From Amoeboaphelidium protococcarum X5 (Eukaryota > Fungi > Aphelidiomycota), in the NCBI GenBank assembly GCA_023515725.1, contig JALDTO010000057.1, positions 1-64,000 on the forward strand: DNA of 64,000 bases, read 5' to 3'. The position numbers were made by a program, and so were the translations under genes. This document shows positions 28,254 through 57,780 of this stretch, piece by piece (within the stretch, counting starts at the first letter, position 1; each line of letters begins with the position of its first letter). Under the pieces are notes generated by a model. That model saw only the letters and a program-made list of their open reading frames with translations, was not told the origin of the DNA and made no database searches.

Positions 28254-28374
28254 TATCAAAGCAATCTTCCTTTTAGTGTTAGTTTACACTGCTTGAGAGA
28301 GATCATCGCTCGCTCAATTTTTTTTGTTTCTGAAAACACGTCAAAATATTAAACTGATCAGTGCAAACAATATA

Positions 28375-31300
28375 ATGAGTACCACTAATTATAGGACAAA
28401 GTAGGTGGTGGAAGAGAATGGAAAGATTAAATTCAAGTATATCAAATTTGCTGATAGACTGAAGAGGATTAATCCAGATGTTGTGCACAGGATAAGTCGC
28501 GTGGAAGAGCTGGAACCAGAGGAAGGCGATTCGTACTTAAACGCGTCACTGCAAGAGTGGAGAGACTTGAATTGCACATTGGACTTTCAGCGCTTCTGTT
28601 AGGAAGTTTAGCCGTTGGTAAATACATTTAATCAGGTGGTATTTTGCAAGGATGATATTGTGTAAGTCTTGCTGAATCACTTGAACAAGGATCAATCTCT
28701 TGCTATGGATGCTTTGCTCAATCTGGTGACAATGTTGGCCAAGGATTTAAGAGATGATTTCTATCCATACTTTGCTCAGTTCATCCTCTGCTTTAGTAAA
28801 TTACTTAAATATTACAAGTAGGATGCCGATATGATTGAAAAGATCTTTGAGGCTATTGGGTACCTGTTCAAGTATCTGAAGCGATTATTGGCAGCCAATT
28901 TCATCTAGACATTCACTGATATTCTACCACTTCTTATGGATGAGACTGAGTTTGTCAAATGGTTTGCCGCGCCGTCGTTGGCTTTTGTATTGCGCAAAGT
29001 TCCTGATGGTGATGCACTGCGTGATGTGATCAAGTAAATGCTTTAGATTGTGGACTCTTAACAGAGTAGTAGAAGCTGTCTTTTGGATTCTGTGGCGGCT
29101 CTGTTTGCAGAGTGCATGAAAGGTATTGGTAATCTATTCCATTTCAAGGCTTCGAGGATATTGGCGCTCCTGTTGGATAATATTTAACATTCCAAGTGTG
29201 GATTAGAATTGACTGAAAAGACGTTGATTTTGTTGCTTGTTCATGGTGACTCTGAATCTAATTAGGTTATTGTGTCCATGTTGCTATCTCATGCGTAAAA
29301 CGTTGGTTTTCGATAGCATTGGCACATTGTCAAGTTGATAGTTCTTGTGCTGGCGGTCAGAAAGGGAACTCGCGTTTAAAAGTCGATATAGAATATTGGA
29401 GAGTGGTGTACTACATCGCTGATATCCAGTATCGATTTGGTATCTTTGAATGAATCTTAGATTGTTGATTTAGCTTCTCATATTGCATTGCTTCTCAATG
29501 CTGCATATGATGATGATAGACTTTTGGATAGCTTGCGTGATATATTCAGTCGAATTAGCGCCGAATAAGTGCTTTAGTTCTGCTCTGTAATGTTGAAAAT
29601 TTGCACCATTGACTTTGCCTAATTGATATTGCCGGTCCTTACTGAAATATTTTAATTAAAGTCAACTGATGATCAATTAAAACTTGTATAGTGGATATTC
29701 TGTCATTAGTGTGATGGTACTATCGGTCTGGATGGTGGACGGAAGTTGGATCTTGGTAATTGTGTTGATGAGGTGATATCAGATGGTGCTTTATCTAAAT
29801 TAACTGCTTAATTGTCAGATTAACATATTGCTTTAATGTCGCTGTTGCCATTCATCACAATTTAGAATGAAGACGCTTTGTAGCAATGCCTGCTCAAGAT
29901 GCTCTAATAGCGCCTGAAGGAGTGTGAGAGTATTGGTGATGGTTTCATTAAGTTTGCAGAGGCTCTCTTCTTGGCTTAAACTTTGTACTCTTTAGGCGTG
30001 CCCCTTAGTTGTGAGGATTTCGCTTCCATGGTTAAGTTGGCCATTTAGCTAAAGTATTGTGGCAACGTGGTGTTTTTATCAGTGGTCTAAGAGTAGGCGG
30101 AGAGGTTGCAGATGATTTCTGCTGATCTAAAAGAGTCATTTGGTGCTATTTTGTTAGAAAACCTCGTATCTCCCGTGAGGAGTTGTCGCCTGTTGAGTTT
30201 GTAGATTCTGAGTTCAATAAGTGAAGGCAGCAGTGTATAGTAGCAGATTCTAAGTCTATTAGTCTTACTCGAATAGGTTGAGTATGCCCCAGAGAATAGC
30301 CGTGAGATGGTTCGCATCATCAATAAAATCAAGACTTTAATTCCTAGAATTGGTAAGTCTGATTTGTATATGTTGCCAAAGATTTGTGTTGGTATGTTGA
30401 CTGCCAATTATAAACCTCTGTGGGCTCCAGTACTCGATCTGATGTGGACTTTTGTCAGTTCTTACCCTAACGGGGCTGCCAAAGATCCTACGTGGGGAGT
30501 AATTTGGAATTTCATCTCTCTGTTTGATTCGCTATTGTGTAGTGAATATCTTCCACGGATGATCAATGTTAGCGCAGAGTAGCTGTGCTCGTGGTAATAA
30601 TTGTAAAAGAAGACATGCTAAGCTGATACAGGTGAGGATGAGCAGTATAAGGGCAACTATCATGATATCACGCTTAATCAAATGGCTTCCTTAAATATTC
30701 CTCTGTATCAAGCAAGTGCTGTTAATGTCTATGCTTAAAATATGCTGTAAAACTTTGAATTGCTATCTAATTTGCGAGTAGACTGGCTGAATGTGTATTC
30801 TCTGCTTTGTACTTCATTGAAAGATAACTCATAGCGATTGAACAAGCTCTGGATTGCGCAGATTGCTAGAGAATATCTTCGTCTGTATGATCAATATTAA
30901 TCCAATTACGAGCACCAGTTGTATCCTAGAAGTCGCCATTTATTTGAGATACTTGCTCATAATTCTGCCTTGCCAAGCATATCTGAAGATATATTGCTTA
31001 GTCTTAGAAAGAGATCCTTTGATATACTATGTCGCCCGGATATCTAAATGCAGAAAAGTGCTCTCAAGTTACTCAAAGTGTTTTCAGAGGTTAGATTGTC
31101 CAAGTATATCGATGATTTATTGGCTCTAGTTGATGAAAAGACTTTCAGAGAGACTCTGGCTAGGTGTTCCATCTCGTAAGAGTCCGATTGGTTGTAATCT
31201 GAAGATCGTCAATTCATCCTGCCTGTATTGCTGCGCATCTTGTTCTCTAAATCTTTCTCTGGATAAGGTGGGAAGAATGTGCAGCGGTTGCGATCTAATC

Positions 31301-34300
31301 GATAGGCATTGATGTCCTATCTGGTGGTTATGGAAGAGAGTGAATTGAATATATTTGTTGATCTTCTGCTTGGTGATTATGAGGCTGAAGATGCAATTGC
31401 GGATATGGAAGTGAAGAACATTATTGGTCTGATGTCAAGACTGCTAGATTTGGTAACGTTCATGAAAACTGCAATTGTCCCCGCCGTGTCGCGACTGTGG
31501 AAGGTGATGTCTTTAGTGTAAAAGTCAGTTGATGTGAAGTTGCAGTAAGACTTGGATAGTCCTCTTGCTGACAAATGGAAATAAGTGCGCACATTGATTT
31601 CCAAGACTGTTTTGCAGTTTTTCAAAATAAGAAGTAGTGATGCGCTTTCGTAGTAGCTGACTCGATGCTTTGATTAAATGTTTAATCTGGTTATTAGACC
31701 GAGATTGAGTAAGTTTGCTGACGAGAATTTACAGTAAGCATCTACGTTATTGTAATTGTTCCATTTATGGAGCCAGTATGAGCAATATTTGCCATTTCTT
31801 AGTGGTGAAGCAGAATAGATTTTCTATCCCTTGATTGATTTGCTAAGTGGTACTAATGTGAAGAGTGAAGTCGTTGATATGACTTTGAGCATATTTGAGG
31901 ACTTGCTGAGTTTTGCCAAAGGGGATAATTCTAATGCTAGTTCAATACTTAAGATTGTTAGTGGTAGGTTTATGTTATCGTTGAAGGCTGCGTTTTATAA
32001 TCTTAAGAGTGACGATGGTATCAAGAGTAAAATTCTTAGGCGCCAAGTATCTCTTCTGTCGAATCTGGTGGATTATATCGACAATGATACTACTGCTTTG
32101 ACTGATTACGTGTCACTGCTGCTTCCATATCTCACAATGGCAGATAGATAAGTTAGTCAAGAGCAGAAAGCTAATATTCTGAAGATTGTTGCAAGTGTAT
32201 TACCTCAGCATCTTAACCTTCTGGATGATTCCAGTGATGTCAATACTATGCAGCGTGCAGTCAGCTCGTTTACTCTCTGCTTAAGATCTTTAACTTTGTA
32301 AGAGTCTAGGTTATTGCTTTGCCAGTGTTTTTAGACTATTGCTAGTAAAGAGTCGCGGTATGAAAGAGTGTGCCAGTTGCTGAATAGCCTGAATGCTTTT
32401 AAAAGTGGCCGGGTTGATGAAGCAGACTGGTCCGGTAGACTGAATTGCGTCTCGTAAATTAACGATACTCTGCTTGATCAACTAGATTGCGTAGAATGGG
32501 GAATCATACTTAATCAATATCTATACTTTGTGCAAGTTCTTGGTGATTAAAGCCTGCGATAGTCTGCATCTTATGGGATGAGAAAGTTTATATGCCTCGC
32601 GGCTTAACTTTAGGATAATTCGCCTTTGAAGAGTTTGTTGGACACTCACATCTTCAGCTTCATTAAGAATGGTGTCAAGTCTTTGGATGAAGATGTAAGG
32701 ACTGAATTTGTTCTTCTCATGGATTGTCTTATTTTGGAGATGCCCGACTGGTCTAAAGTTGCTGGACTGGGCGAACTAAGAGCTGGTGGTGACGAAGAGG
32801 CAAATTTCTTCACTAACATTATTCATCTGTAGCTTCATAGAAGGGCCAAAGCTATTAGAAGGTTCACTGAGCATTTGAAAACTGACTCATCCCAGTAAAT
32901 TCTATGCTCCACTTTGGTCAATGTGTTTATGCCAATCTTTATGAACAATCTTTTGTCTGCAGAGAAGAAAATACATGACTAGATCGTTGTGGATTCTATT
33001 CATGCCATCGCTGCTATATGTCGTCGGTTGACTTGGTCATAGTATTACAGTGTCTACTCTCAGCTTAAGAAGCTGTTTGATTTGAAAGGATAAAAGTCTA
33101 TGTTAAGAGCGCTATTGGCTGTTTTAGAGCAATTTCATTGGAAGGCTTAAGATGGCTGTGAGTAGGAATGTTCAGCGATGGATGCTTTATCCTCTAAAAT
33201 CTTACCTTACCTGTACAAGATTTTGAATATGCGTACGGAAGATGACTCTAAACTGGCTATTAGAATCCCAGTTGCACTCACTTATGCGTAGTTGCTGTAA
33301 CATTTATCTGACAGTGTTTTCGTGTACGAGATTAAGCGTCTGTTTACTTGCTTGGTGTACATTTTGCGGTCTCGTAGCCAAGAGGTTAGAGATTAGGCGC
33401 GTAATACACTGGTAAAAATTGTTAAGCTACTTGGTCACAACTGTCTTGAGTATTTAGTGAAGGAGCTCAGATCTGCTCTCACTAAAGGTTATCAATTGCA
33501 TGTTCTTGGATACAGTCTTTCCAGTATCATCATTGACAGTTTCGATGTATTTACTATTGGTGCTTTTGATCGATGCATGGATGTCACTCTGTCAATATTG
33601 TTTACTGATATATTTGGACTCGTAGGAGAGTAGAAAGAGGTTGAAGAGCTGGCTCGTCAGTCCAAAGAGTATCGCGGCTGTCGTAGCATTGAGGCATTTG
33701 AGTGTTTATCCGCTGTGCTATCTCCATCTTCGCTACCAAAGGTTATGGATCGTGTTACCAGTCTATTAGATGCATCTCAGGGTAGATCATTTAGTGTAAA
33801 GATGGGCGACGTATTGCGCAAGTTTTCCATAGGATTGTTGAGGAATAGTGGTCTAGATTCTGATGCTTTGATGTCTTATATTTAATCATTGTTGTAGCCA
33901 GTTTAAAGCAGCTTCCACTCTTAAAAGAAACAAGGTACTGTTTTGGCTGAGAATACCGAATAGTCTAATGACATGGATTAGGATGCTTCTCCAATTACTA
34001 AGACTGAATCTTCTCAGGCTGTTAAACATTACTTTGATTAGAATAAGCACTTGTTAATTGAGCTTGGTTTGAATCTACTGAGAGGCTTACTGAAGAGAGA
34101 CCAGGTGGATGACTCTGAACAATGGAATATAATTCTTGACTAACTCAGCGCCTTGTTGGAGGTTAAGGAGACTGGTGTGCTGAATTCTTGCCTCAAATGT
34201 GTGTGCTAAATGTTGAACAGGAAATTATAGTTATCATCTGATGTGCTGAGCAGGTGCTGTAATTTGTGTGTCAATATAGTTCTTCGACACTTGAATCTGA

Positions 34301-35928
34301 ATAATGCTCTGGTGCAAGAGTGTCTACGTCTGCTGGCTGTGACTCTGAAAAGTTGCCCAGATATTGAACTCTTGAATGAATACCAGTTGACTGCTATTCT
34401 GAAAATGATAAAGCCTGATATTCCAAAGTCAGATGAATAATCTGTGATATTCTCCTTCATCAGATCTGTGCTTGCCAAGCGTATGATGGCTCCAATCTTG
34501 TATGACATTATTGATGAGTGCTGTCAATGTGCTGTCACTCATCAGTCTGGTCACGTTTAGTCTGTCTGTAGAAGTATAGCTGTGTAGTTCTACCTTGATT
34601 ATCCCGTGGGTGAGAATAAGATCAAGAAGCTGTTCTAGTTCGTTGCCAGGAATATGAGTTATGACATTGAGTCTGGCAGATTATCTGTTATGCAAATGTT
34701 GGAACTGATTCTCATTAAGTTTCCCGCTGATGTGATTGATGCACAAGGAGAAGCGTTATTCATGGCTCTAGTGATGTGTCTTGCTAATGATCAATCACCT
34801 CGCTGTAAAGAGAAAGCTGCTCAGGTTTTGAATAGTCTATTCCCTATGATGTCCTAGCAGAATTTGGCGAAAGTTGAGAATCTGATCACTCTGTGGCTGG
34901 ATGGTGAGAACACTTTGTAGAGTCTTGGAGTGCAAGTGCTCGGTATTTTAATCTTGAGCCAGTCTCGACTAGTCGATGATGGTAATAGTTGTATAGTATC
35001 CTCAAAATCTGTGGAGACGTTCGTATAGAAATGCTTCACGGTATTTGACCAGAGTTTGTGCGAAGATTAAGATTGGCAGTTGCGTTATCAGTGTTTAGTA
35101 TTCTTAAATAAGTGCTTATTGGCATATAAATTGTCAGTGTATGATCAGTTATTAGAGTCAGTGATGAAGTGTATGTTGGACGTTCACGCTTGGGTGCGTC
35201 TGGCTTCTAGTCGTTTGGTGCTTTAGATTGCACGGTCTTATCCTCATTCATTAGCTTTACACACTAATAAATTGATGAGGTTAAGTCTGAATCAGTTGAA
35301 GAGTTCTGTGCTGGATGAATAACAGTGTGCTTTGACCCTGGACAATCTCAAAGTTATTGGTGATTCTGAGTACCGCCAATGCCTTCCATCTGGATTTGCT
35401 AGGGGTGCTGCAGATGTTTAGGACAGTACAAGTGATGACCAAGATCAAGCATAGAATCTCCTATCTTTGTACAAAAGAGCAATTGTGATGGCTAAACTTG
35501 AGCAGAATTCACCATCGGTTTTGGTTAGACGTGTGGTAATTGACTGGCTCACCCATATCGCTGATAGTGTAAGTAAAGAAGACTTATGCCTAATACTGCC
35601 AACTATTCTGCCATTCATTTACAGAACATCTTAGGATGAGACCACAATTGTTACTGGATTTGAAGAGGTGAAAACACAATGCCACCTAACAATGAGAGCG
35701 ATCGAGAAGAAGATTGGTACATCAGAGTATTTCAAGATTCAGCAAGAGGTGTAGATGGAGATTCAAAAGGTGAAGAATGAGCGTCTAAGAGAAAAGTAAT
35801 TAATGGCAGTATCGGATCCACAACGTTATGAGCAGCGAAAATTTCAGAAGCGCTCGATGAAGTAGAATGCCAAGAAGCGTAAAGTTGAGGAGAACAATAT
35901 CCGCTATGGGAAGAAGTTAAGACAATGA
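28375..35928 (+). CDS. UTP20: U3 snoRNP/SSU processome HEAT-repeat protein Utp20, about 2517 aa, apparently intronless
   Basis: FKYIKFADRLKRI...LQEWRDLNCTLDF, DEEANFFTNIIHLQLHRRAKAIRR, LRSRSQEVRDQAR, LTKGYQLHVLGY and SYDIESGRLSV; one frame of 7.5 kb with many TAR codons. Confidence 0.93.
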
Positions 35929-43831: not shown

Positions 43832-44974
43832 ACCGCAACCTCGTCACTATGCAAATCGTAATGGCCAAAAGAAGTGCAGAATGTAAAGTTGGAATAGATT
43901 AAAAGGGACAAAAACACGACTTGAAACATCATCGGCCACGTTCTAAATGTATCAAAAAGGGAAATTCTCTGCGCGCGATATCGTCATCATACAAACGACA
44001 GGTTTCAACAAAACTCGCCGCGTCACTCTGTGCTCTTTAATTGATTCAGCATACATACCGTAGTTTAATCGAATGATTTAGATCTTGCTAGAGATTCAAA
44101 ACTATAAGAGACTCTCCGCAGTGACTTTTTGTGACGCGCTAAGATCAGTCATACTTGAGGCTATTCTGTGACTATTTAAAAAGATGTGGAGCCAAATTTA
44201 AAGCAGATTTAGAATATCCGTCATATCAAATAACCTGTAAATGTAATTTTAACACGCAACTCTTTGTGCAGTCCAGAAATAAAGTCGAATGCAGTTTTGA
44301 TGCAGTCGATAGAAAGGCGTTTGTTGTTTTTATGCAAGCGGAATATTATGGTCAGCGAAAAGCGTTTCAGGCCCCGTTTCAAGTAAAGTTGATTTAGCAT
44401 AGTCTTAACGGATGATGGGAAAGTTTTATAGAGTCGACGTTATAAGCGACTTCAAATTCTTATACTGTCGGTCATCACTGCGTTTTAATGGCGCGGTAAG
44501 TTCAGTCTTGTTTCAACCAACACCGTAATAAATCTATTAGTGTTGGAGACAAACTAGAATCAGATTCACAATATTTAGCAGATATTAAAGTTGAGGGGGA
44601 AATTTGATGGGAGCAACTCATTTTTCCATAAAAAATTAGTCGGTTGCAGCTTTCATGCATAGTTTTTATGCAAACGGAATATCTGAACAGCCGTAGGCTA
44701 TAAATATACCGTTTCAAGTACTATAAGCACTGTAATATCTCAGTACTACAATGCTTTAGGCCATATACAATGCTCTTATTGTTAAAAGTGCAAAGTGCAA
44801 AAACGGAAACCGTTAAGGTTGACGTTGGAAGAATGCGCGAGCGATCGAGCGCGCGACGGTGATCTCGCAGAAAACAGACAAGTCAGTTGTTTCAAACAAA
44901 TCCTCAATGATTTTGCATTAAACTTTTTGTATTAAATCCACTTTCAATCTCAGTCTCCATATTATCTGTCTTGT

Positions 44975-47407
44975 TCAAATACTACACTCATCCATGGTAC
45001 CAGAGCAATTGTTTGTCTTGAAGCTAGTTGGTTTGAAGTTCCCCCAATGTGCGATGAACTTATCCAAATCACCGCCAAAGTGCTTTCTCAGACATTTCAT
45101 GATCGGGCAGTATTGCTTCACGTAGAATGATTTGGCGCCAGCTGATAACCCGACGGTTGAGCCAGGATCATCCACTGCAAGAATGGCCTCCAACTTCGCC
45201 ATGGCAGTCTTCGCTTTTCTCACTTTCTCTCTCCCAGGCATATCATTCACAACTTCATCCTACTGAACAGCTGTGATGGCAGGTACAACATCAGCTACGT
45301 CAGTGTCTTCTTCATCGGATTCATAGAGTTCATCATCAGAGTGAACCGCAGCTTGTTCACGTAACTATCTGGAAGAAGATTATTGAGAAGTCAGAGTAGA
45401 TTTTGGCTACTTCAACTTAGCTGATTGAGTGGCAGCAATCAATCCATTCGCATAAAGCTCAAGCATCCTACGCAGCTCATTAATCTCCTCCGGAGTGGCA
45501 TTAGGTGCAATTTCTTTCAACTTTGCCTCAATAAGCTGCAGCACAGTCTCTTTCTTCTGCAACTGGAGAAGTGCATCGTAAATCACTCTAGGTCCACCAA
45601 CTGCATCAACATCAGATAATCCACATAAGCTACGAACAATCTCTTGACTCACCTGCTGCAGACAAAAATTGCCTCTAGAATGGGCAGCATTCAGACTGCG
45701 AGCCATCTATAGCTACTCACAGTAGGCTGATCTGAATTTGCTTACCACGGAAGACACGTCCAAACGTCTAGTCTTCGCTAATTCTAGCAAATAGCTAGCA
45801 TCCTTCTTATACAATGCGGCATTAGCGGACGAAGCGTGTCGCGCACTCTTAGTGATGTCAATCTCTGATCCCATTCCCCAAACAGCAAGCAAATAGCCAG
45901 TCTTCCTACTAGTGTGCGTACCAAATTTACCATCGGGATTGCCGGTAGCAATCTTACAAGCTTTCTGATACTGCCTATGATAAGATACGTAAGAGATGTT
46001 GTACGCCGCATGCCCAACTTGCTTCACAGCATCCAGTGTACTCTCTTGAGGGAACAAGAATCCAGTTCTAATCCCAGAAATAAAAATCCACGTCAAAAGC
46101 GCACGAACCGGGCACAATTCGGGCACATCATAATCCGTCCAAAGAGTCAAGCACACTCTAACACGATCAGACTTGCCTTTAATGTAGAAAGCAAGGGAAG
46201 ATATACTGCCATCACTTTGAAAGGTCGCAAGATCCTTGTTGAGACAATTTTCCAGCCTAGGATCATGAATTTTCAAATCGGTGACTTCATCATTGCGCAG
46301 AAATAGCTTGATACTAACGATAATCATCGTCCACATCATGAATGACTTCGCATCATTTTTCGAGATGAAATACTCGCGGAGACGTAGTAATTCCCAAGGT
46401 GTGAGCGGCTAGCTGCCTTCGGACACGTAGCTGCATCCATCGCGGGAGTTCAATCTCTACATGTTAGTCATGAGGGAAGAATTCTTTGGATCTCCACCCA
46501 GCCAAATACGAGGAGCCATCGGATGGAACCGACAGCCAGATCTATCACCACGCTCAGAACGTTGGATGCACTCTTCGCAGATATCTCTGTACTCCCCCCT
46601 CTAATTACGACTATCATGCAGCACAGAGACAGCCGATAACAACTGGTCAACATTCTGTGGCATATTCCAACCACCCTAGCACTTGATATCGTGCCCATAG
46701 ACACATTTCACAGCGTTGCCATTCTCGTCTTTTAGCAAAGAACCCTTCTCATTACGCTTGAACTTGATAAACAAAATGATGCTCTTGGCGTTCATTGACG
46801 GTGTGTACTGCGGGGGGTTAGGAAGCAGCATTAAACTCGAGCTGTAGTCACCAATTAGCGCAAAAAAGTACCGCAATCCTCTGTAATGCTTCTAGTAGGC
46901 TTACATACTATTCACAGCCAAAGGCCTACCGCCAGTGAGTGGCACAGATACGTCGGATCGAGTCAACCTCAGCAGCTTCAACGTCTCTCCAATGCCTTCA
47001 TCCAGCTTATACTTGTACGCCGCTTCAATGCGATACACATGGCTGTTCTCCGACTTCTTGCGTCTCTTCACCTTCTTCGCCAACTGCTCATCATCCAGAC
47101 CATCATCAGAGTCGTAATCGTCGTCGTCATCTTCATCTTCATTCTCCAGCTACCTATTGAAAGCAGCACTGACTTGAGCAGAACTTTGTGAAGTGATATC
47201 AGCAGTTTGATTCATGCTAACAACACTTGTTTCAGCCTCGCACCCAGCCAGACCAGAACTTGAGGAGGCGGATACGCCGACACTACTGCCAACACCAGCA
47301 CACTCATCAACGGCTGGGATGCCAGTACTACTGTTGGAGGTGGTGATACCACCTCCAGATGGCTACGAGTCACTCTACACTGCTCTAGAACGCTTCCTGC
47401 CAGACAT
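44975..47407 (-). mobile_element. Crypton-like tyrosine recombinase ORF, intact, 810 aa
   Basis: Five ORF-track fragments join into one frame under TAR=Gln. Catalytic set: R (FLRNDE), K (KGKSD), HxxR (HTSRK), H (ARH) and Y (ALYKKD), plus CPVRAL...LFP. No RT or gag is linked. Confidence 0.85.
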
Positions 47408-47912
47408 GCGAGACGGTCGAGATTGTAACAAAGCGAGTTCGGTGCGTTTCTCCGGGTGCAAGGTGCAAAACACTACCGGTGCAAAAGAAAACAAGCGTTT
47501 TATTTGTTTTAAAAGAGTCAGATACAAAAGATTACTTGGTGCTGTCGACAGGTAACGCGCCAGAACCAAATAGCTGCCACAGCTCCAAATCTCCATTCTC
47601 ACGCGCCACAGCAGTGATAGGAGGATAAGGATATCCATCCGGTGTACTTTTTATACACGCAATAGCAGAGGGTTGAATATTCAAAAATCTTACTCGATGA
47701 GTCTCCATTTGATGCGTAGTATATCACCAATATTACACAGATCAATCCAGTTTTCGGATAGTCCAAGAGAGTGAAATTTGATAATTTTTCGCCTTCGCTT
47801 TGACACTTGGCTTCAAAGTGGAAAAGCACCGCCTGAAATATAATGAAAATTCAACAATTATTTAGATGAAACTACCTTTGATAAATTTCACCATGTTTAA
47901 ATCAATGTTACT

Positions 47913-49370
47913 TCATTCATTTTAAATCAGTTCGAATTCTGCCTCTAGATTTTTTAACGGCCGCTGATTAGGATGATCGAAGTCTGTTAGCCCCAGTTTA
48001 GTGTACTTTTTATAAAACTCATCCAATCGATACTCCATTTGCGCATACCTTTTGGAGTAATTCTGCACGTATACATTGTCTACAAAGTCTGGATATTTAC
48101 TGATGAGTTCAGAGAAATCATTAGCTTTGCGAACAAGCCTGGCTATTTCATTGCTCAATGCAGATTTTTTGTAAAGCTTCTTCGCGACGCCGTGAACAGA
48201 ATGCCACAAATATGAGTACTTTTGATCGGCATCTTTAAGACTAGTCACAATGATACTAATGATAGCAGGGATTCTCATTTCCACTACGCTTTTGAGTTTA
48301 TCATCATACTAGAGGAAATCGGAATGAAGTCTTTTATACTCGCTAGCGGCATCGTTATAGAGAGACGCCAAACGCCGCATCTCTGAAGCTCCTTCTTTCA
48401 ACAAACTTCTCATATCAGGACTAGATGACAAAGTTTAACGGACTCTGATTAGATACTCCTTAAAGCTCAGTAACGCATCATATAGCAGGACACTATCCTA
48501 TCGAAGCTATAGAAATGCAGTGCCAGTATCTTCACCAGGTTGAGCTTGTTATAATCTCATGAGAGCACGTTCATATTAGCCATGATACTCCATCGCCTTA
48601 CTTTTAGAACTTAAAGCTCCTTCCATTATCTAGTCAAGTAGAAGAATTTAGGTTTGCAAATCAGATTCCATTGTAGCCTCTTTTCTACTGGATTTTGGCC
48701 TGACATGTTTACCTTCACTTTTAAAACCCTTTTTTCCAGCAATGGTCTTCTGTGTGCTTGGTTCAACGTCTTCACCGCTGTGCTCGCCATCTAGCTTATC
48801 TTATTACTAAGGTGTCTATAAAGAGCTCAGAAGAGCCAATGACGTCGCTCGACTTTACTTAGTAGCCTGCTTATAAGCGCGATCCAATCTTACAGGTTAC
48901 TTTGGTGTTAAGAATGGGCCAGCTTCAATCTCGGATCTCAGATCACGCGGTATCTCTTACCATTACGGCTCAGACTAATCGTAATCATCCCTAAACGACT
49001 AGCTAGGCTCTATTTACGCGTCATCACTCACTCTAAGATGACTCAAACGCTTCTCCCACGCATTAAACGCTGGCTTTTGACTAATACTGGAAGAGCCTTA
49101 ATCGCGATCACGTTGAGAAGATTACGCGCTATGCAATACTTTAATGCCATGTCCTTGACCACTATTTCCACCCAGGATATCAGAATTTGGTGGTATAGCC
49201 TACATGGATGAAATTGCAACACCGTCATCATCATCGTCATATCCTTCTCCATTCTTATCACCGCCCAATGTATCATAAAAATCGCCATCATCAGCAGCAT
49301 CACGAGTGCCACCTGTTGATATTGCACGTATTACCAAGAATATGCTCAGCAAGATAATTGCATTCTTCAT
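47913..49370 (-). CDS. Secreted protein A of the DFYDxxG family, 485 aa
   Basis: Signal peptide MKNAIILLSIFLVIRA; DFYDTLG at residue 30; acidic linker, basic patch and helical C-terminal domain. Confidence 0.8.
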
Positions 49371-49730
49371 ATTTACTATTACTTGATTAATCTGTCAGTA
49401 CATTTATCTACAGAGAAATGATTAATACTCACGATATCAATCGAGCATTCTGTATCATTTCCCACGTGGTCCATCTACTCCGTGATCACCCTGCCAGTCC
49501 TAAGTAAAAATTCAAACGCCGACACTTTGATAGAGACATTAGGCATCTGCATTTGAAAATATTATAAGTAAACGCGTTTTTAGACTTTAAAAGTCAATTG
49601 AATGATCTATCTTCTCATTTTGAATGTAATATGAGCTTTACATGGCACAACAATGAAAAATACAACAGCTTATAACATGCTCTAAAATTTATTTTCTCTT
49701 CAGCTATTCAAATTCTCATGTTCCTCATTA

Positions 49731-51128
49731 TCACTGAGATCCCAACTGCGCCTTGCAGAGTTACATTCTCTCCTTGTAATCATAAAACAGTTCAGAGATC
49801 TAAGAATTAATGGCTTAGACTTCTTGAGATGGATATCTATTGGCGTAAACGTACGCATAAACCATATCTACCTTTTCGCGAGTACCAAACACGCTTTCGC
49901 TCGAACTCTCAAATCCCTCATCTTCGCACTGGAGCGACAGAACGTCCTCCAACAGGTCCAGAAGATGGCCAAACACCTCAACTTCAGAGCTTCTACCATA
50001 AGTTCTTACATCTTTAATTAACACTTTAAATAGTGCTTCTTATTGAGAGAACTCCTCTCTGAGCTGTAATCCTTGCTGATAGCTATCTGTCAACTCTTTA
50101 TACTTTTCAGCAAATCCAGAGTATTGAGCATCGGCGGTTTGCAGAAACTTGACATTGATGCAATCCAGAGCACTTTCAAACAGCTCAAATGCAGCATAAG
50201 CGTTGGCATAATGTACAGAGCCTTCCGACGCAAAAAGCACCATATTATACAGCATATCCAGCTTTTAACTAGGAACCATATTCTCTTTAGCGGAAAACAC
50301 GTCAGCCAATAACTTTAGTTACATAACGTTGTCTTTGAAATCTTCATAAAATAGATTGAAATTCTCCTTGAGCTCTATCATAGTTTACACTTAGTACTTT
50401 AACTTTGACACTTGCTTTTCGTGCACAGATTCTAGCTCACTAAGCTTCTGCTCTACCATTTTTTGATTTTATAACTAAGCTTCAGCAAAGAGAGCGTCCA
50501 AATCATCATCCTCGTCCAGCGCTTTGCCTTTATTCTAAACATTGGAATTATTGGCTGATGCTTTGCTTTTGCTCTTCTTCTTCTTCTTCTTCTTCTTATT
50601 TTCTGGGCTGGATGGCTTTTTAAGAGCTTCACTTGGGGACTGATCGCCGGTATAATCAAAATCCTCTTCCAATTCTCCGTTTGACGCGTCAATCTAACGC
50701 TCAGGCGGCAACTCTCCGGTAATTACAGATACATCCAGCTAATATTAACTTTCATCATTAATATCATACTCGCCAGTTTCGCGATTAAAGTCTTAGGGAG
50801 TTGATTCATTATCCAAGCTATCGATCACAGATTTAGAAGCGAAGGACTCTGGCTATTCAATTTCGTCAATGTTGGCAATAGCATCCTCATTGGCGAGAAG
50901 CTGGCCATCACCGAAATTACTCAGTGCGTCATCATCTTCAAGCAGAGTAGATATTTTCAGAGGATTCGTGTTATCAAAATCGCCAAACTTTACGAATTGT
51001 GTACCATCTTCATGACTATTCATATCAAAGCCAAGAGTGTCATAAAAGTCCTCGACGAAGCGCGTAGGAGCAGCATTAGTCCCAGAAACAGCAATCAACA
51101 CAAAGACTATCGGTAGAGATATCATCAT
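49731..51128 (-). CDS. Secreted protein B of the DFYDxxG family, 465 aa
   Basis: Signal peptide MMISLPIVFVLIAVSGTNA; DFYDTLG at residue 27; NKKKKKKKSKSK; helical C-terminal domain. Confidence 0.8.
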
Positions 51129-51450
51129 GATTTATACAGCGAATAATTTGTCAAATCACTGATGCAATGTCAAAATAAAAAAAGAGTGCAAATGATGATA
51201 TGCCCCTGAATGTGAATGAGATAATGTCAAGTCGTTGTTTGACTGCACGAGAGATGCAAGATTCAAATCTATCAAATTGGTGGTTATTAATGTGCTCTGC
51301 AAAAAGGCATTAAAGGGGAAAAGTTCACTATACTGGTAATAACTGAGAAAAATAGAATATGAAATCCATGCAACCTTTGTCTATCTAAAATTTTATTACT
51401 CTATAAGCAACATCAAAATCAACTCTTATAAACCTTCCGAATTTCTCATA

Positions 51451-53025
51451 TCAATCCAATGAATGATCAGTGACGCGTGGTAACAACTGGAGCATAATCT
51501 TTTTTAAACGCACCTATGAAGAGACTCTAAATTTGCTGATAGAATCCGCCACTTCATCGTTTTCATCACCAATGTAGCCCAGAACTTGCAACGCTCTATT
51601 AATTTCCATGCTAGTGTAATCCGCATAATCCTAGTCCAGTACGCGCCCGTTTTTATACGTTGCTTATACCTTTCTTTGCAAATCATAAAGTCTTAGATCA
51701 ACAAAGGACATGATTGCCGGTATGTTCTATTGTATAGTATCACAGAAAGACTTGTCGAATTTTCTAAACTGCTCAACACGAGTATTCATTTGAGAAACTA
51801 TCGTTTGCACTCTGACTTGCTAACTCTTTAGGATTTCAGTTATCTCTACAAATTCTGGGGATTCAGACTCGAAATTCTAAACATATTGATCAATTTCTCC
51901 CCTTTCACGCTAAATTGCATCAAGCAAGTTAGCAATCTGAGGGACCAGCATTCGCAGCTTGTCCAGAAAATACAAAACTCCAGCAAATGCCTCAATCTTC
52001 AAATCAACAGAAATGGTAGAAGCAGAGGTTTGCATCTAAATCAGCTGTTAACATGGCTTGGACGTCAGAAGCATTTAGAAAAGACCCTCAAGCTCAATCT
52101 ACTTGGCTGCCGTATCTACTATCTTATCTTCAATAACAGTCTTCAACTGCTTTTTATACTATTCAAAATGATACAACACAAGAGCTTTCGCGGCCTTCTC
52201 CTAAATCTCTGATTGTTCAGCTTTCATCTAAGCAGCTTCCTTAATCGCCGCTTCCAAAAGCGCGTCTTCATCAACAGCACTCATAGCTTGGTTCGCCACC
52301 TTATTTTTCTAGTTCTTAGACTTAGACTTAGACTTTGACTCCTTATTCGTGGCCTTCTTTGATGAGGTCTATGATTGCGTTGCATGGCGTTGACTGCTAT
52401 GCGCCTGACTAGATTTTGTTGAATGCTGCACAGATTTATCGATTTCACTGCCTTTGTCAGAAGACACGTTGTCGGATAGAATACTGTACGGGTTGCTATT
52501 AGTAAAAGATTCCACAGCACTATTGACTTAAGCTTCATGCAGCTTTTGCTGGTGAGCACCATCAGCAGAGGAACTTTCTGATAATTAGTACTGAGACAAA
52601 TCTACCAATTCCTCTTCATAAGACTTATTGCCCGAAATGTCCTATACATCAGCTTACTCTTACTGAGACATAGGAGAAGGGTCGTCGACAACACTATCAA
52701 AATCATATGGTGAAGTGGAATAACGCGCGTCCATTGCGATGCCATCATCATCGTCTTCTGGCGCAATATCAGGTACGATATTATCACTGAGATACTCACC
52801 ATCAGGCTTAAGATACTAACGATCACCGCGCCTAATGATAGGATTCTACTAATTGGCATCCAATAAAATCGTATCGCCCTCAGACTTTGATTTGACACCA
52901 AAATAATCATAGAAATCAGCATCATCATCCACAGCTTGGTGGCCAGATGCACGACCTGTCATGGGCTACGCGCGAAGACAATCAACGAGAACTATAACGG
53001 AAAACACTTTACACAGCAGCAACAT
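51451..53025 (-). CDS. Secreted protein C of the DFYDxxG family, 524 aa
   Basis: Signal peptide MLLLCKVFSVIVLVDCLRA; DFYDYFG at residue 37; KKATNKESKSKSKSKNQKNK; helical C-terminal domain. Confidence 0.8.
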
Positions 53026-53466: not shown

Positions 53467-55134
53467 TCAGAGAGCCATCATTAGTAGAGCAGTAAACGCT
53501 ATTGAGAGCGCAGAGAGACCACCGGCGATCTTATTACCGGCACTGTTAGAATCAGAGTTGGACACTATGGAGCTGCCAACATCATTCTCGTTCTTCTGTG
53601 GGATTGGAGTTTGAGTTGCCGCTGCGGCAGAGCTGGTGGTAGTTGATCTGATGGATGTGGTATTACTCAAAGTTGAGTTTCCGCCACCCATCGTGGAATT
53701 CTTAAGACCACCAGTAGCATTATTCTATGAAGATGGACCCTTATTGCTGTCACCATAGTGCATTCCAGGAGGTGGATTGATGAGGACAGGAGTATACTAT
53801 GAAGTGTCGACTTCATCACAGAATGGTAACTACTCGTATTACTTTGCTTCTTCGCTCTTTTCAGGCTCACACACACAGTTGTCGCCAGCAGGAGCAGAAG
53901 AACCGTATCCACCGTCACCACTGCCTGTTGAAGGACTAGACTGACCATAACCTCCGCTTGATGGAGATGCGCACTTGCAGTTGTCTCCGCCAGTTGCAGG
54001 ACTGGAGCTTCCATAGCCGCCACTTGGGCTCTTAGGAGATTAACCACCTGCAGGTGGCTGAGTTGCCGGAGAGGTACTAGGAGAAGGAGAAGGACCAGAG
54101 CTACCGTATCCACCAGATGGACTTTGACTAGTTGGTTTGGAGCCGGCAGGAGATGAACTGCCATATCCACCTGAAGGACTTTGACCAGCTGGACTGGATC
54201 CACCATATCCACCACTTGGGCTTGCGCTCGGCTATGAACCAGCTGGGGTAGGAGATGGAGATTGACCACCGTAGGTAGGTGCGTTAGCAACAGGGGCAGC
54301 AGGTCCGCCGCTGGTAGAAGGAGAGGCTCCCTTTGGTGTTGCAGGGCTAGGTGCTGAAGTATCACCGCCATAAGAAGGAGTGTTCACAGCAGGAGAGCCA
54401 GATCCACCCTTTTGAGGAGCGTTGGTTGGAGGCAGGTCATAAAGAGTGACAGTGTTGGTACATGGCGCCTTACCAGTTTTGGAAGGTGCAGGCACAGGAA
54501 GGCCACCGGCTGGGCTCGAACCGGAAGGAGCCTTGGGTGTAGGCGCCTTGTCTCCGCCAGCGCTAGTCCCATTCTTTGAAGGAGCAGGCACGGGCATTGC
54601 CGGAGCAGGAGCAGGCTTTTCCGGTACATGCGTCTTTGAAGCCACCGAGTCAGATTCGCAAGGAGTTGTAGATGACGGCTTAGTCTGATCCGGCTTGACA
54701 TCAGTAGGAGGCTTCATTGTGCTGTTACCAGGAGCAGCGGGTTGTGGTGCAGGCATAGGAGCCGGCTTTGGCGCCGCAGGCTATGGATGAGGAGTCTACT
54801 AAGCAGCTTTCTCGGACTCACAAGGAGTAGATTAAGCAGGCTTGGTAGAGTCAGCAGCAACTGGATGAACAGGAGGAGCTGAAGCAGACTATGGAGAAGC
54901 CCCATTCGGAAGAGGAACATCATCCGGAAGCTTCATGCGGTGCTTTTCATCAGGAGCAGGGACAGGAGCCGCTGGTTATTAGCCACCAGCTGGTGCAGGA
55001 GTTGAGGGAGCAGATTATCCGTAGCCAGGACTATTTTACGCGCCCTTCTCATGGCTTGTTCCCTCTACTAGCAGTGTGTTGAACTGAGAAGCCAACAAGA
55101 TTAACGCGATTGATTAATATATTCCAAATTTCAT
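53467..55134 (-). CDS. GPI-anchored Pro/Ser/Gly-rich surface protein with SPSGGYG repeats, 555 aa
   Basis: Signal peptide, low-complexity body and C-terminal NSAG...LSALSIAFTALLMMAL GPI signal. Confidence 0.85.
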
Positions 55135-55775: not shown

Positions 55776-56874
55776 CAATTAGAAAGGAGATATCGGTTGT
55801 TATAAAAATCCTTTTAGCAGTTTGAGATTGAAATTTAGTGATCTTTTAGCGAAAGGAAATGACTGATCAATACGAAAAAAGATCAAATGAATGCGGTCAT
55901 GAACTTAAGCTTTAGAAAAGAGCGACGATCGAATTACGATTTTGCATCTTGAAATGATGCAATGCTTCTGCCACTTTTCTAGATTGTAGAATATACCTAA
56001 TACAAAGATTTTGTAAAGTATCTAGTAATTCGAATCAGCGCAGTTTTGGGCTGAACCGATTATTTTCTTAGCTCCGCATTTAGAAAGGCCGTATACGGTA
56101 GCAAGCGCCGTAGAAGTAAAGTTAATAGCTTCATAATATTAAAAGCGTATAATGAGGTAAAACCAATAAACTATAATAAACCAATATGCTTTAAGTATTG
56201 ATAAAACAAAATCAAAGGTCATAAGTGCGTGGATATGCACTCTCAAATTCAAACGAATTCATCAGACGGAAGTCCCAGGATCGAATCACGTTCAATCTAT
56301 TACGGAGTAGATTGCGCAGCATAGATAAAACTTTAAGCCAACTCTGTTGATTTTTTTTATTCTGTATATAACTAAAGTTAATTAGTAGTTGCATCACGCG
56401 GTCAAGTATCCGCTTTGTTCACCTATGGGTTTCTACTTAACACCCTACAGGAAGGAATGCATGGGCTGTAACCCTTGATTACTATTGACAAGTCCAGCTC
56501 TTTCGAGCCAGCACCTGGACAGCTCTATAGCGTCCGACGTGTTCAAGCATCCTTCTCTCCTTCCTTTACAATTAAATACATGAATCTGACCCCCAGCACA
56601 TTGTCCGCATAATACACATTAATTCACCAAGAAGTTATAGTATTTGCACAGATTGGTAATATGGCTGAAGCTATCTGACAGGACTTCAATCTTTAGCTTG
56701 GTGAGGTCCTTTGACAACTTGCACTCACATAAAGCGGTGATACCTTTCTGCATTACTTGACTTAAGTCCTATATATCGATCTTCGTTATCAAAAGTACAT
56801 TTCAACATACTTTGAGCGCAACTTGCTACATATTGCACCATTTTCCAGTCATCATCCGGGGGAACTTCACCAGT

Positions 56875-57780
56875 TCATGCTATCGGTTTGACGGCATCCA
56901 TGGACTTTGTTTCAGCCACGTGCTCTACAAAAAGATTGTAGAACTATCCAGTCAAAGTTTTTCTCTAATTATCCGCAAGAATATTGGGGAATGAGAGAGC
57001 ATGCAACCCTCGCAGTCCTGAGTCAGTGACACAATTTTACTTTGGAGAGCGCCCAGATACTGATGGAATGGATGACGTTTATGGAACCAAGATCTAAGCT
57101 GGCGACTTTAACTCGTGTATCTCACGAAGTTGTGAAATAATTACTCGATCTTTTGCTTAAGTGGCCATAAGGTTTGATTGCACATTACTTGGCTGATTCG
57201 CAGGAGAAGAGGCGTTGTAATACTATGCAATAAACTGTTGTCTTTTATTGCAAAAATCATTAATCAGCTCCCGGTGTCTTTCTGGACTGCGGGGGTCAAG
57301 CGTAAAAGCGCTCCCGCTAATACCGGCATGAATCCAGCCACCCATCTGTTCCATTGGATGACCATCCTTCACCATCTTCTGGAGCACACTTCTAGCTTTA
57401 TCTTTCAACTACTACGAGGAGAACTTGGCCAAATCAGGATAGTTGACATCCTTCAACATCTAAGCAAACTTATCAATCTTATTATAGTACTTGCAAAGGC
57501 CATGTTCCAATTGCCTCTCTTCTTCGGGAGTCCATTTATGACGGTTTGCACCAGTTTGAACAGCAAATGCAAGGAAGCGTAAACTTGATTTTGTTGTGCC
57601 TCAAAATAGCCTTTCAACTATTATGGGCACCTTAATTGTAAGTGCCCACCTTATTTACTTTCACAAGAGAAACGTACAAGATTTTTACTATTCAAAGTAC
57701 GCACCATGACGAGTGGAAACACATATCTTATAATTGCTCTTTGTGTTTACACTCTGCTTGCTGGTCGCGTCCTTTGTCAT
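56875..57780 (-). CDS. Telobox-type Myb/SANT domain protein (TRF/Tbf1-like domain); 5' exon structure uncertain
   Basis: HKWTPEEERQLEHGLCKY...FAQMLKDVNYPDLAKFSSQQLKDKARSV at about 57390-57540; possible intron about 57600-57675; coding-like remnants continue beyond TGA 56875. Confidence 0.6.

Follow-up and report, generated by a model that had tools for sequence, protein, structure and literature searches.

The locus and its three genes

Aphelids branch next to the fungi and destroy microalgal cultures. We have analysed a cluster of three genes, here called A, B and C, which lies at positions 47913 to 53025 of a stretch of 64,000 nucleotides (the window) from contig C57 of the Amoeboaphelidium protococcarum genome (23.6 Mb, 346 contigs). 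Each gene encodes a protein that begins with a signal-peptide-like segment and carries shortly after it a seven-residue word, DFYDYFG in A and DFYDTLG in B and C. An initial annotation of the window had read the trio as a candidate effector family and the word as an RxLR-like targeting signal. The cluster is a set of species-specific, secreted-type orphan genes with a constrained seven-residue word; it is not a demonstrated RxLR analogue.

The three genes are co-oriented on the minus strand, as are all the features of the trio given below. Gene A (51451 to 53025) encodes 524 residues, gene B (49731 to 51128) 465 and gene C (47913 to 49370) 485, in each case as a single intact open reading frame (ORF) that runs from ATG to TGA with no internal TGA; the annotated lengths, the coordinates of the word and its first residues (30 in C, 27 in B, 37 in A) proved to be exact. 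Among database proteins, B and C correspond to P0010 and P0008, and the 524-residue P0013 was taken to be A. The copies of A are P0012, P0003 and P0005, those of B are P0001, P0011 and L074:11789-13192, and those of C are P0009, P0002 and L074:13558-15015. The proteins of the duplicate locus described below are listed by NCBI as A. protococcarum hypothetical proteins MIR68_009877-9; the second strain is MP228.

Signal peptides were judged by hydrophobicity and by the presence of small residues near the predicted cleavage site: the hydrophobic core of the three N-termini reaches Kyte-Doolittle values of 3.4 to 3.9 over 8 residues, with a small residue at the predicted cleavage site. The signal-peptide-like segment covers residues 1-19 in A (52969 to 53025), where the predicted cut after L-R-A would leave x-P, residues 1-19 in B (51072 to 51128), where A-P-T-R follows, and residues 1-16 in C (49323 to 49370), where it ends in R-A as in A. 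By hydrophobicity there is no transmembrane stretch after the N-terminus in A, B or C. These hydrophobic starts, together with the naming of the duplicates as hypothetical proteins of A. protococcarum, bear out the annotation of the trio as secreted-type orphan proteins of an algal parasitoid. The word occupies residues 37-43 of A (52897 to 52917), residues 27-33 of B (51030 to 51050) and residues 30-36 of C (49263 to 49283).

Between the word and the C-terminal domain all three proteins have an acidic disordered linker rich in S, P and G. The Lys-rich patch annotated for the whole trio is strong in A (52255 to 52359, followed by an acidic helix start, DEDALL) and in B (poly-Lys at residues 178-189, 50562 to 50597, followed by the helix start DDDLDAL) and weak in C. 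The C-terminal domain of A (approximately residues 249-512, 51490 to 52281) was modelled by AlphaFold2 with a mean local confidence (pLDDT) of 79.5 and a predicted template-modelling score (pTM) of 0.65. The model has five long helices, which we read as two tandem three-helix bundles that share a helix of 70 residues, kinked at P-A-I (51706-51720). The model of the C domain of gene C (approximately residues 236-458, 47997 to 48665) is of low confidence (pLDDT 51) and repeats the five-helix order of A, with P-A-I (48255-48269) placed in the long third helix, 23 residues from its end. Both models are all helical, in agreement with the annotated alpha-helical domain. In B the corresponding domain (approximately residues 205-465, 49734 to 50516) is the best-conserved part of the protein.

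Genetic code

In these ORFs TAA and TAG are read as sense codons and TGA as the stop. The opposite reading, in which the genes are broken, was rejected on the following evidence: in alignments of the duplicate genes, 80 of the 107 positions at which TAA/TAG are aligned have TAR or CAR as the counterpart, TAA/TAG occur within the majority of the genome's DnaJ domains, NCBI annotates TAA/TAG as Gln in the proteins of the duplicate locus, and the reassignment of these codons to Gln has been published (PMC5304391). Since TAA and TAG are sense codons, the trio genes are not broken. TAA and TAG were kept as X in our translations of the trio genes, while a survey of ORF starts (50 residues) used table 6; divergence was counted with the table-6 codon classes, and 12 codons were printed around each motif. 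Pieces of the window and of the locus were searched stop-free, and full-length searches were carried out with the natural database proteins. The promoter scan, whose model is bacterial, was uninformative.

Conservation of the motif

The shared word DFY[DN]x[LF]G is beyond chance: with the local composition its expected frequency is approximately 2.5e-6 per window of 40 residues, and with profiles built by leaving out one gene at a time only 0, 0 and 1 of 2000 shuffles of the mature N-terminus reach the real score. The trio block is duplicated on contig C235 at approximately 88% nucleotide identity, consistent with the genome-wide duplication reported for A. protococcarum (PMC10608142); it is also present twice in the second strain and partly in a wild contig. 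Over the 14 copies thus available the motif is DFY[DN][TYQ][LF]G. It is identical in 5 of 5 copies of A and in 5 of 5 copies of B; the C duplicate on C235 is intact and reads DFYNQFG, its three substitutions remaining within the D/N, polar and hydrophobic classes. The Arg upstream of the motif is His in two of the four C copies (T-H instead of T(G)R), and T(G)R, which had been listed as part of the common layout, drops out as a shared feature.

The motif is under constraint and the trio genes are under purifying selection. The ratio of nonsynonymous to synonymous divergence (dN/dS) between duplicates of the trio genes is 0.48, 0.32 and 0.41; the upstream neighbour has 0.14. In B and C the seven motif residues are identical at the protein level, with 5 synonymous differences in 21 nt. 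In the most divergent comparison of B, the proportions of synonymous and nonsynonymous differences (pS and pN) over residues 20-80 are 0.49 and 0.12, while in the motif pN is 0 and only synonymous changes, two in number, are seen. We consider the motif constrained because of these synonymous differences between B and C, and because pN is 0 in the motif of B amid diverged codons. The earlier claim that the word is kept by purifying selection despite synonymous changes is therefore upheld as regards constraint, but not as regards invariance, as the C copy on C235 demonstrates.

The four copies of each trio gene are mosaics, in which pS jumps from approximately 0.0 to 0.6 along one gene; breakpoints separate residues 1-100 of A from the rest, and the N-half of B from its C-half (47913-53025; L012-L014, L073, L074). 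This patchy divergence, as it appears in the alignments, points to recombination between subgenomes or strains. Recombination could also be invoked for the motif itself, in that the word might have no present function and might owe its spread or its persistence to gene conversion, in short tracts, from one neighbouring gene to another. The mosaic structure of the copies fits such a history, as does the identity of 19 of 22 nt around the A and C motifs; however, recent conversion would have erased the five synonymous differences between B and C, and there is no longer common DNA tract. On balance we regard this explanation as improbable.

All or at least some of the trio locus occurs in metagenomes from biofilm, freshwater, sediment and wastewater (runs X12-X15); no RNA run is listed for it. 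The biofilm run has a contig of 3.9 kb (L075) that carries the divergent A allele.

Distribution of the motif in the genome

The strict pattern and DFY[DN]x[LF]G occur at only six sites of the genome, which are the three genes and their duplicates on C235. Profiles of the N-terminus and of the whole proteins recovered the same six copies only, in searches that have a loose first pass and whose counts are thus lower bounds. One-mismatch variants are not enriched (46 sites versus 55 in the reversed control); among all 40 of the other one-mismatch contexts, a single new ORF had both a signal peptide and the word close to its start, namely a DnaJ protein that is ERdj3-like and whose helix I reads DYYNILG (C24:32008). 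The neighbouring secreted-type genes are without the word. The looser pattern [DE]FYxx[LF]G occurs at 44 sites versus 24 in a reversed control that was not codon-matched, and 34 of these contexts are unread. At C233:648767 a hydrophobic stretch precedes GFYDTLG, but this possible fourth site was discarded, there being no in-frame Met after the upstream TGA; DFYNLVG at C146/C155 has no hydrophobic leader.

These counts bear on the proposal that the word is a sorting, cleavage or translocation signal of the RxLR/PEXEL kind that defines an effector class. The position of the motif, 7-19 residues past the predicted cleavage site, in an acidic context and in proteins that barely align, is what such a signal would show, and the excess of the looser pattern, with its 34 unread contexts, is in its favour. 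On the other side, the exact word belongs to one cluster only, the one-mismatch set is not in excess and contributed a J-domain protein as its sole new ORF with signal peptide and motif, neighbouring secreted-type genes do without the word, the Arg is lost in two C copies, and neither RxLR nor RxLx[EQD] is found in residues 16-90 of any of 12 copies. RxLR-dEER, CRN LFLAK, PEXEL and Y/F/WxC motifs recur in tens to hundreds of proteins that are not otherwise related. Since signals of the RxLR/PEXEL kind mark many unrelated proteins while this motif is confined, within the searches run and with the 34 looser sites unread, to the three genes and their duplicate, an outcome that the annotation itself had named among those that would refute it, the targeting-signal reading is unsupported, and we consider it very improbable: the Arg/Leu chemistry is absent and shared ancestry explains the sharing. 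From its distribution, the motif looks like a family trait and not a general host-targeting signal.

The one DnaJ protein recovered above raises the question of whether the word is a relic of helix I of a J domain, the 5' end of an ERdj3-like gene having provided the signal peptide and DYYxILG before the J domain decayed. This origin is suggested by the fact that the only other near-match found with a signal peptide is the ERdj3-like DnaJ, that three more DnaJs fit the relaxed pattern, and that the generic folds matched by A include BAG domains (Z approximately 11), which bind Hsp70. Yet HPD is missing from the six copies in this genome, as are helices II-III, the trio loci give no PF00226 match, and a J profile made from four of the genome's own DnaJs scores at most 2.8 bits. 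Position 5 of the word is T, Y or Q instead of aliphatic, such that 0 of 12 copies fit the strict D[YF]Yx[ILV]LG, and a lone helix I is without known function for selection to keep. A J-domain relic thus appears decidedly improbable. As for the DnaJ gene itself (C24:31814-32008, L019), it encodes a signal-peptide DnaJ of ERdj3/Scj1 type with the helix I word directly after the leader; J-domain matches number approximately 48 genome-wide and are mostly paired.

Homologues and folds

No homologue outside A. protococcarum was found with B, C or a three-protein profile in 5.8 billion proteins, nor with an N-terminal profile run against 1.84 billion representatives; apart from the repeat protein P0004, these searches returned only A. 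protococcarum copies. Two metagenome scans gave nothing specific beyond A. protococcarum. There was no Pfam match over the cut-off, no PDB sequence family and, by features, no ESM Atlas family. The repeat protein P0004, which was returned in the homologue searches, bears no sign of relation to the trio. These blank searches do not prove absence in other aphelids. In the literature that we searched, neither the trio cluster nor such a large helical secreted family in an aphelid is described.

Structural comparisons of the C domain of A gave leading matches with Z of 11-15 at approximately 10-18% identity, the best having Z 14.9 at 9% identity. They are designed proteins, the syntaxin Habc domain, spectrin, BAG and Not5, which are tied with no clear winner. 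The best result of a shape search in the ESM Atlas (template-modelling score 0.57) was an unrelated segment of a starch synthase, and Foldseek against the PDB and viral folds gave E above 0.03, which is not significant. Going by the model, these matches show a common helical arrangement, not homology. The structural approach suggested with the annotation has thus yielded helical models for A and C, but only generic bundles as their relatives. The trio proteins are not orthologues of housekeeping families, and no outside homologue, Pfam family or specific fold was found in any of these searches.

Similarity among A, B and C outside the motif

Outside the motif, A and C share the match F..[YF]D-x10-[IM]PAI.S, whose local alignment is reached by 2 of 1000 shuffles; with the signal peptide and motif removed, the A-C profile score is reached by 0 of 500 and 3 of 499 block shuffles. 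The two proteins also have in common the R-A cleavage context, a D-rich word and, in the models, the position of the P-A-I proline, 23 residues from the end of a third helix of 70-74 residues. Paralogy of A and C is probable. A and B contain collinear words picked by eye, namely NP[IL], PEDDD, D.SQYQL and the Lys patch followed by a DDxL helix, and it is plausible that B is a paralogue of A and C. The statement that only A and C share more than the motif was right about the reality of the A/C match and too strong in view of the further words of A and B.

A model for the trio

The explanation that we favour, and to which we would give about an even chance, is that A and C, and probably B as well, arose long ago by tandem duplication of one Amoeboaphelidium-specific secreted protein and have kept a short docking motif. 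Old tandem paralogy is preferred because the similarity of A and C extends beyond the motif and because their helices are predicted in one and the same arrangement. The signal peptide would take each protein into the endoplasmic reticulum (ER), where it would be cut to leave the x-P start, and the protein would then leave the parasite; the cyst, or the fibrillar zone that separates the parasite and host membranes, is the most plausible place for this. DFY[DN]x[LF]G, exposed on the disordered acidic arm, could act as a docking motif, the aromatic and hydrophobic residues of which may bind one partner common to the three paralogues, for example a sorting receptor or scaffold of the parasite, or a host surface protein. 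The flexible linker would keep the motif at a distance from the rod-like domain, a helical bundle in which the paralogues would have diverged. According to this model the motif would be a family-internal relic kept by selection, as opposed to a secretome-wide address label. We take isolate FD01, in which the infection interface was described, to be now assigned to the sister species A. occidentale. In that description the parasite sits between the host wall and the host plasma membrane, with a fibrillar interface (PMC3577820).

A number of observations weigh against this explanation. The motif is not the best-conserved part of the proteins, 8-22% of all 7-residue windows being invariant over four copies, and residues 1-100 of A are highly conserved at synonymous sites too, from which it follows that this region is part of a recombination mosaic. 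The A-C comparison by HHalign gives E 0.01 with a probability of 4%, which is low; the A-B profile test is not significant, since 60-71 of 500 shuffles reach the score, and the B-C profile test shows no similarity outside the N-terminus. Finally, the Lys patches of A and B look like nuclear localisation signals and would be in keeping with proteins that act within host cells.

If the last point is given more weight, the proteins could be translocated effectors whose motif mimics a cytosolic docking motif of the host, such as YxxPhi (adaptor mu), FFAT-like (VAP) or AIM/LIR (ATG8), with the Lys patch as nuclear localisation signal. YxxPhi is matched by each of the 12 copies scored and [WFY]xx[LIV] by 11 of them; like FFAT, however, these patterns are low in information. 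A penalty of at most 2 on the matrix of PMC3261905, conserved in orthologues, was taken as the mark of an FFAT-like motif. In no copy does any FFAT-like site score better than the word, which has a penalty of 2-3 in A and 2-2.5 in three C copies, on a scale where approximately 10% of background ORFs reach 2.5 or less; the penalty rises to 3-3.5 in B and 4-4.5 in the C duplicate, and the conserved hydrophobic residue at position 6 and Gly at position 7 are free or penalised in FFAT. Besides the poly-Lys patches of A and B, this explanation has in its favour that the host membrane is intact early in infection (PMC3577820). Arrival in the host cytosol is hypothetical, and the predicted signal peptide argues against a cytosolic site unless the protein is delivered into the host. 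Host mimicry is in our estimation unlikely. A further variant, which we find improbable, is that the trio are effectors that cross the host plasma membrane and that a degenerate motif for uptake or host docking, a YxxPhi/FFAT-like mimic, is best preserved in their DFY[DN]x[LF]G and would be present, more loosely, in other secreted proteins among the 34 unread sites.

The acidic surroundings of the motif also allow for a modification in the Golgi, namely sulfation of its tyrosine on the N-terminal arm, as in sulfated signalling peptides and pathogen mimics. The Tyr is invariant and lies among acidic residues in a disordered segment of secreted type, and Sulfotransfer_3 (PF13469) matches two loci of the genome with 34 bits each, a partial match that makes these loci candidates at most for a protein tyrosine sulfotransferase. 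The plant tyrosine sulfotransferase needs a D directly before the Y. Such a D-Y pair is present only in A, and sulfation would leave the invariant F and G unexplained; we therefore judge it very unlikely indeed. The two Sulfotransfer_3 matches, both over the cut-off, are at C57:332438-332818 and C249:394375-394659.

Comparison with known systems

Like the effectors with RxLR-dEER and CRN LFLAK motifs in oomycetes, PEXEL in Plasmodium and Y/F/WxC in powdery mildews, the trio combines a signal-peptide-like start with a short conserved word and acidic residues, and it shares with them a lineage-specific C-terminal domain, clustered genes and a parasitic organism. It differs from the RxLR/PEXEL classes in that its motif, for which processing and delivery are hypothetical, was found in one three-gene cluster and has no Arg/Leu core. 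A likeness in organisation is also offered by the lineage-specific tandem clusters of secreted orphans in fungal and fungus-related parasites, with which the trio has in common co-oriented tandem genes, no outside homologue, a relaxed dN/dS (0.3-0.5, compared with 0.14 in the neighbour), mosaic alleles and a short N-terminal word. Unlike small Cys-rich secreted orphans, the trio proteins are large (465-524 residues) and Cys-poor, with an acidic disordered arm and long helical bundles.

With ER-luminal J-domain proteins (ERdj3/DNAJB11/Scj1, PF00226) the trio shares, by prediction, a signal peptide soon followed by D[YF]YxxLG, but it is without HPD or a J-domain match, its fifth residue is non-aliphatic and its continuation is acidic and disordered. 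The D-F-Y-D core after acidic residues, in a disordered segment and with a penalty of 2-2.5 in some copies, is reminiscent of the FFAT-like motifs that bind VAP (PMC3261905); in contrast to these, the trio is predicted to be routed through the secretory pathway, scores are poor for B and the C duplicate, and the conservation pattern is different. The C domain of A resembles three-helix bundles such as syntaxin Habc, spectrin repeats, BAG and the Not3/5 N-terminus in its long antiparallel helices, and no homology is claimed.

A transcriptome study of the infection lists only effector candidates based on similarity (PMC8657485). The trio adds three concrete, selected, species-specific proteins of secreted type, together with a seven-residue handle for work with peptides and point mutations. 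A motif internal to a family is a modest lead, and it would gain real importance only on proof that the proteins are delivered into algal cells or that a wider class of degenerate motifs exists.

Neighbourhood of the trio

Upstream of the trio, on the minus strand, lies a gene for a Pro/Gly-rich secreted-type protein of 555 residues without the motif (53467-55134). With 94% identity between it and its duplicate and a dN/dS of 0.14, this protein is far better conserved than the trio. Farther on, the alignment to C235 is interrupted at 56344-56373 and at 57124-57572, and the region 56373-56530 includes a stretch of 100-150 nt with matches of approximately 80% on four other contigs.

On the other side, a mobile element of 2.76 kb (window 44766-47527) has approximately 19 other full-length copies in the genome at about 100% identity, and by this measure it looks recently active. 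Its terminal sequences are TACAATGCTCTTATT and GAGTCAGATACAA, and each end has TACAA. It has one long ORF (44975-47680, minus strand), in which six stop-free pieces were scanned with no Pfam match. The element cuts a WD40 gene downstream of C (47523-47708), presumably UTP4-like, after 186 nt, the remainder lying outside the window; uninterrupted copies of the gene are found on C235 and on the two contigs of the second strain. The truncation reflects either a rearrangement through two copies of the element or an assembly join at the repeat. Elsewhere in the window, an ORF of 2,500 codons on the plus strand (28297-35925) is open only with TAA/TAG as sense codons, and its start looks UTP20-like.

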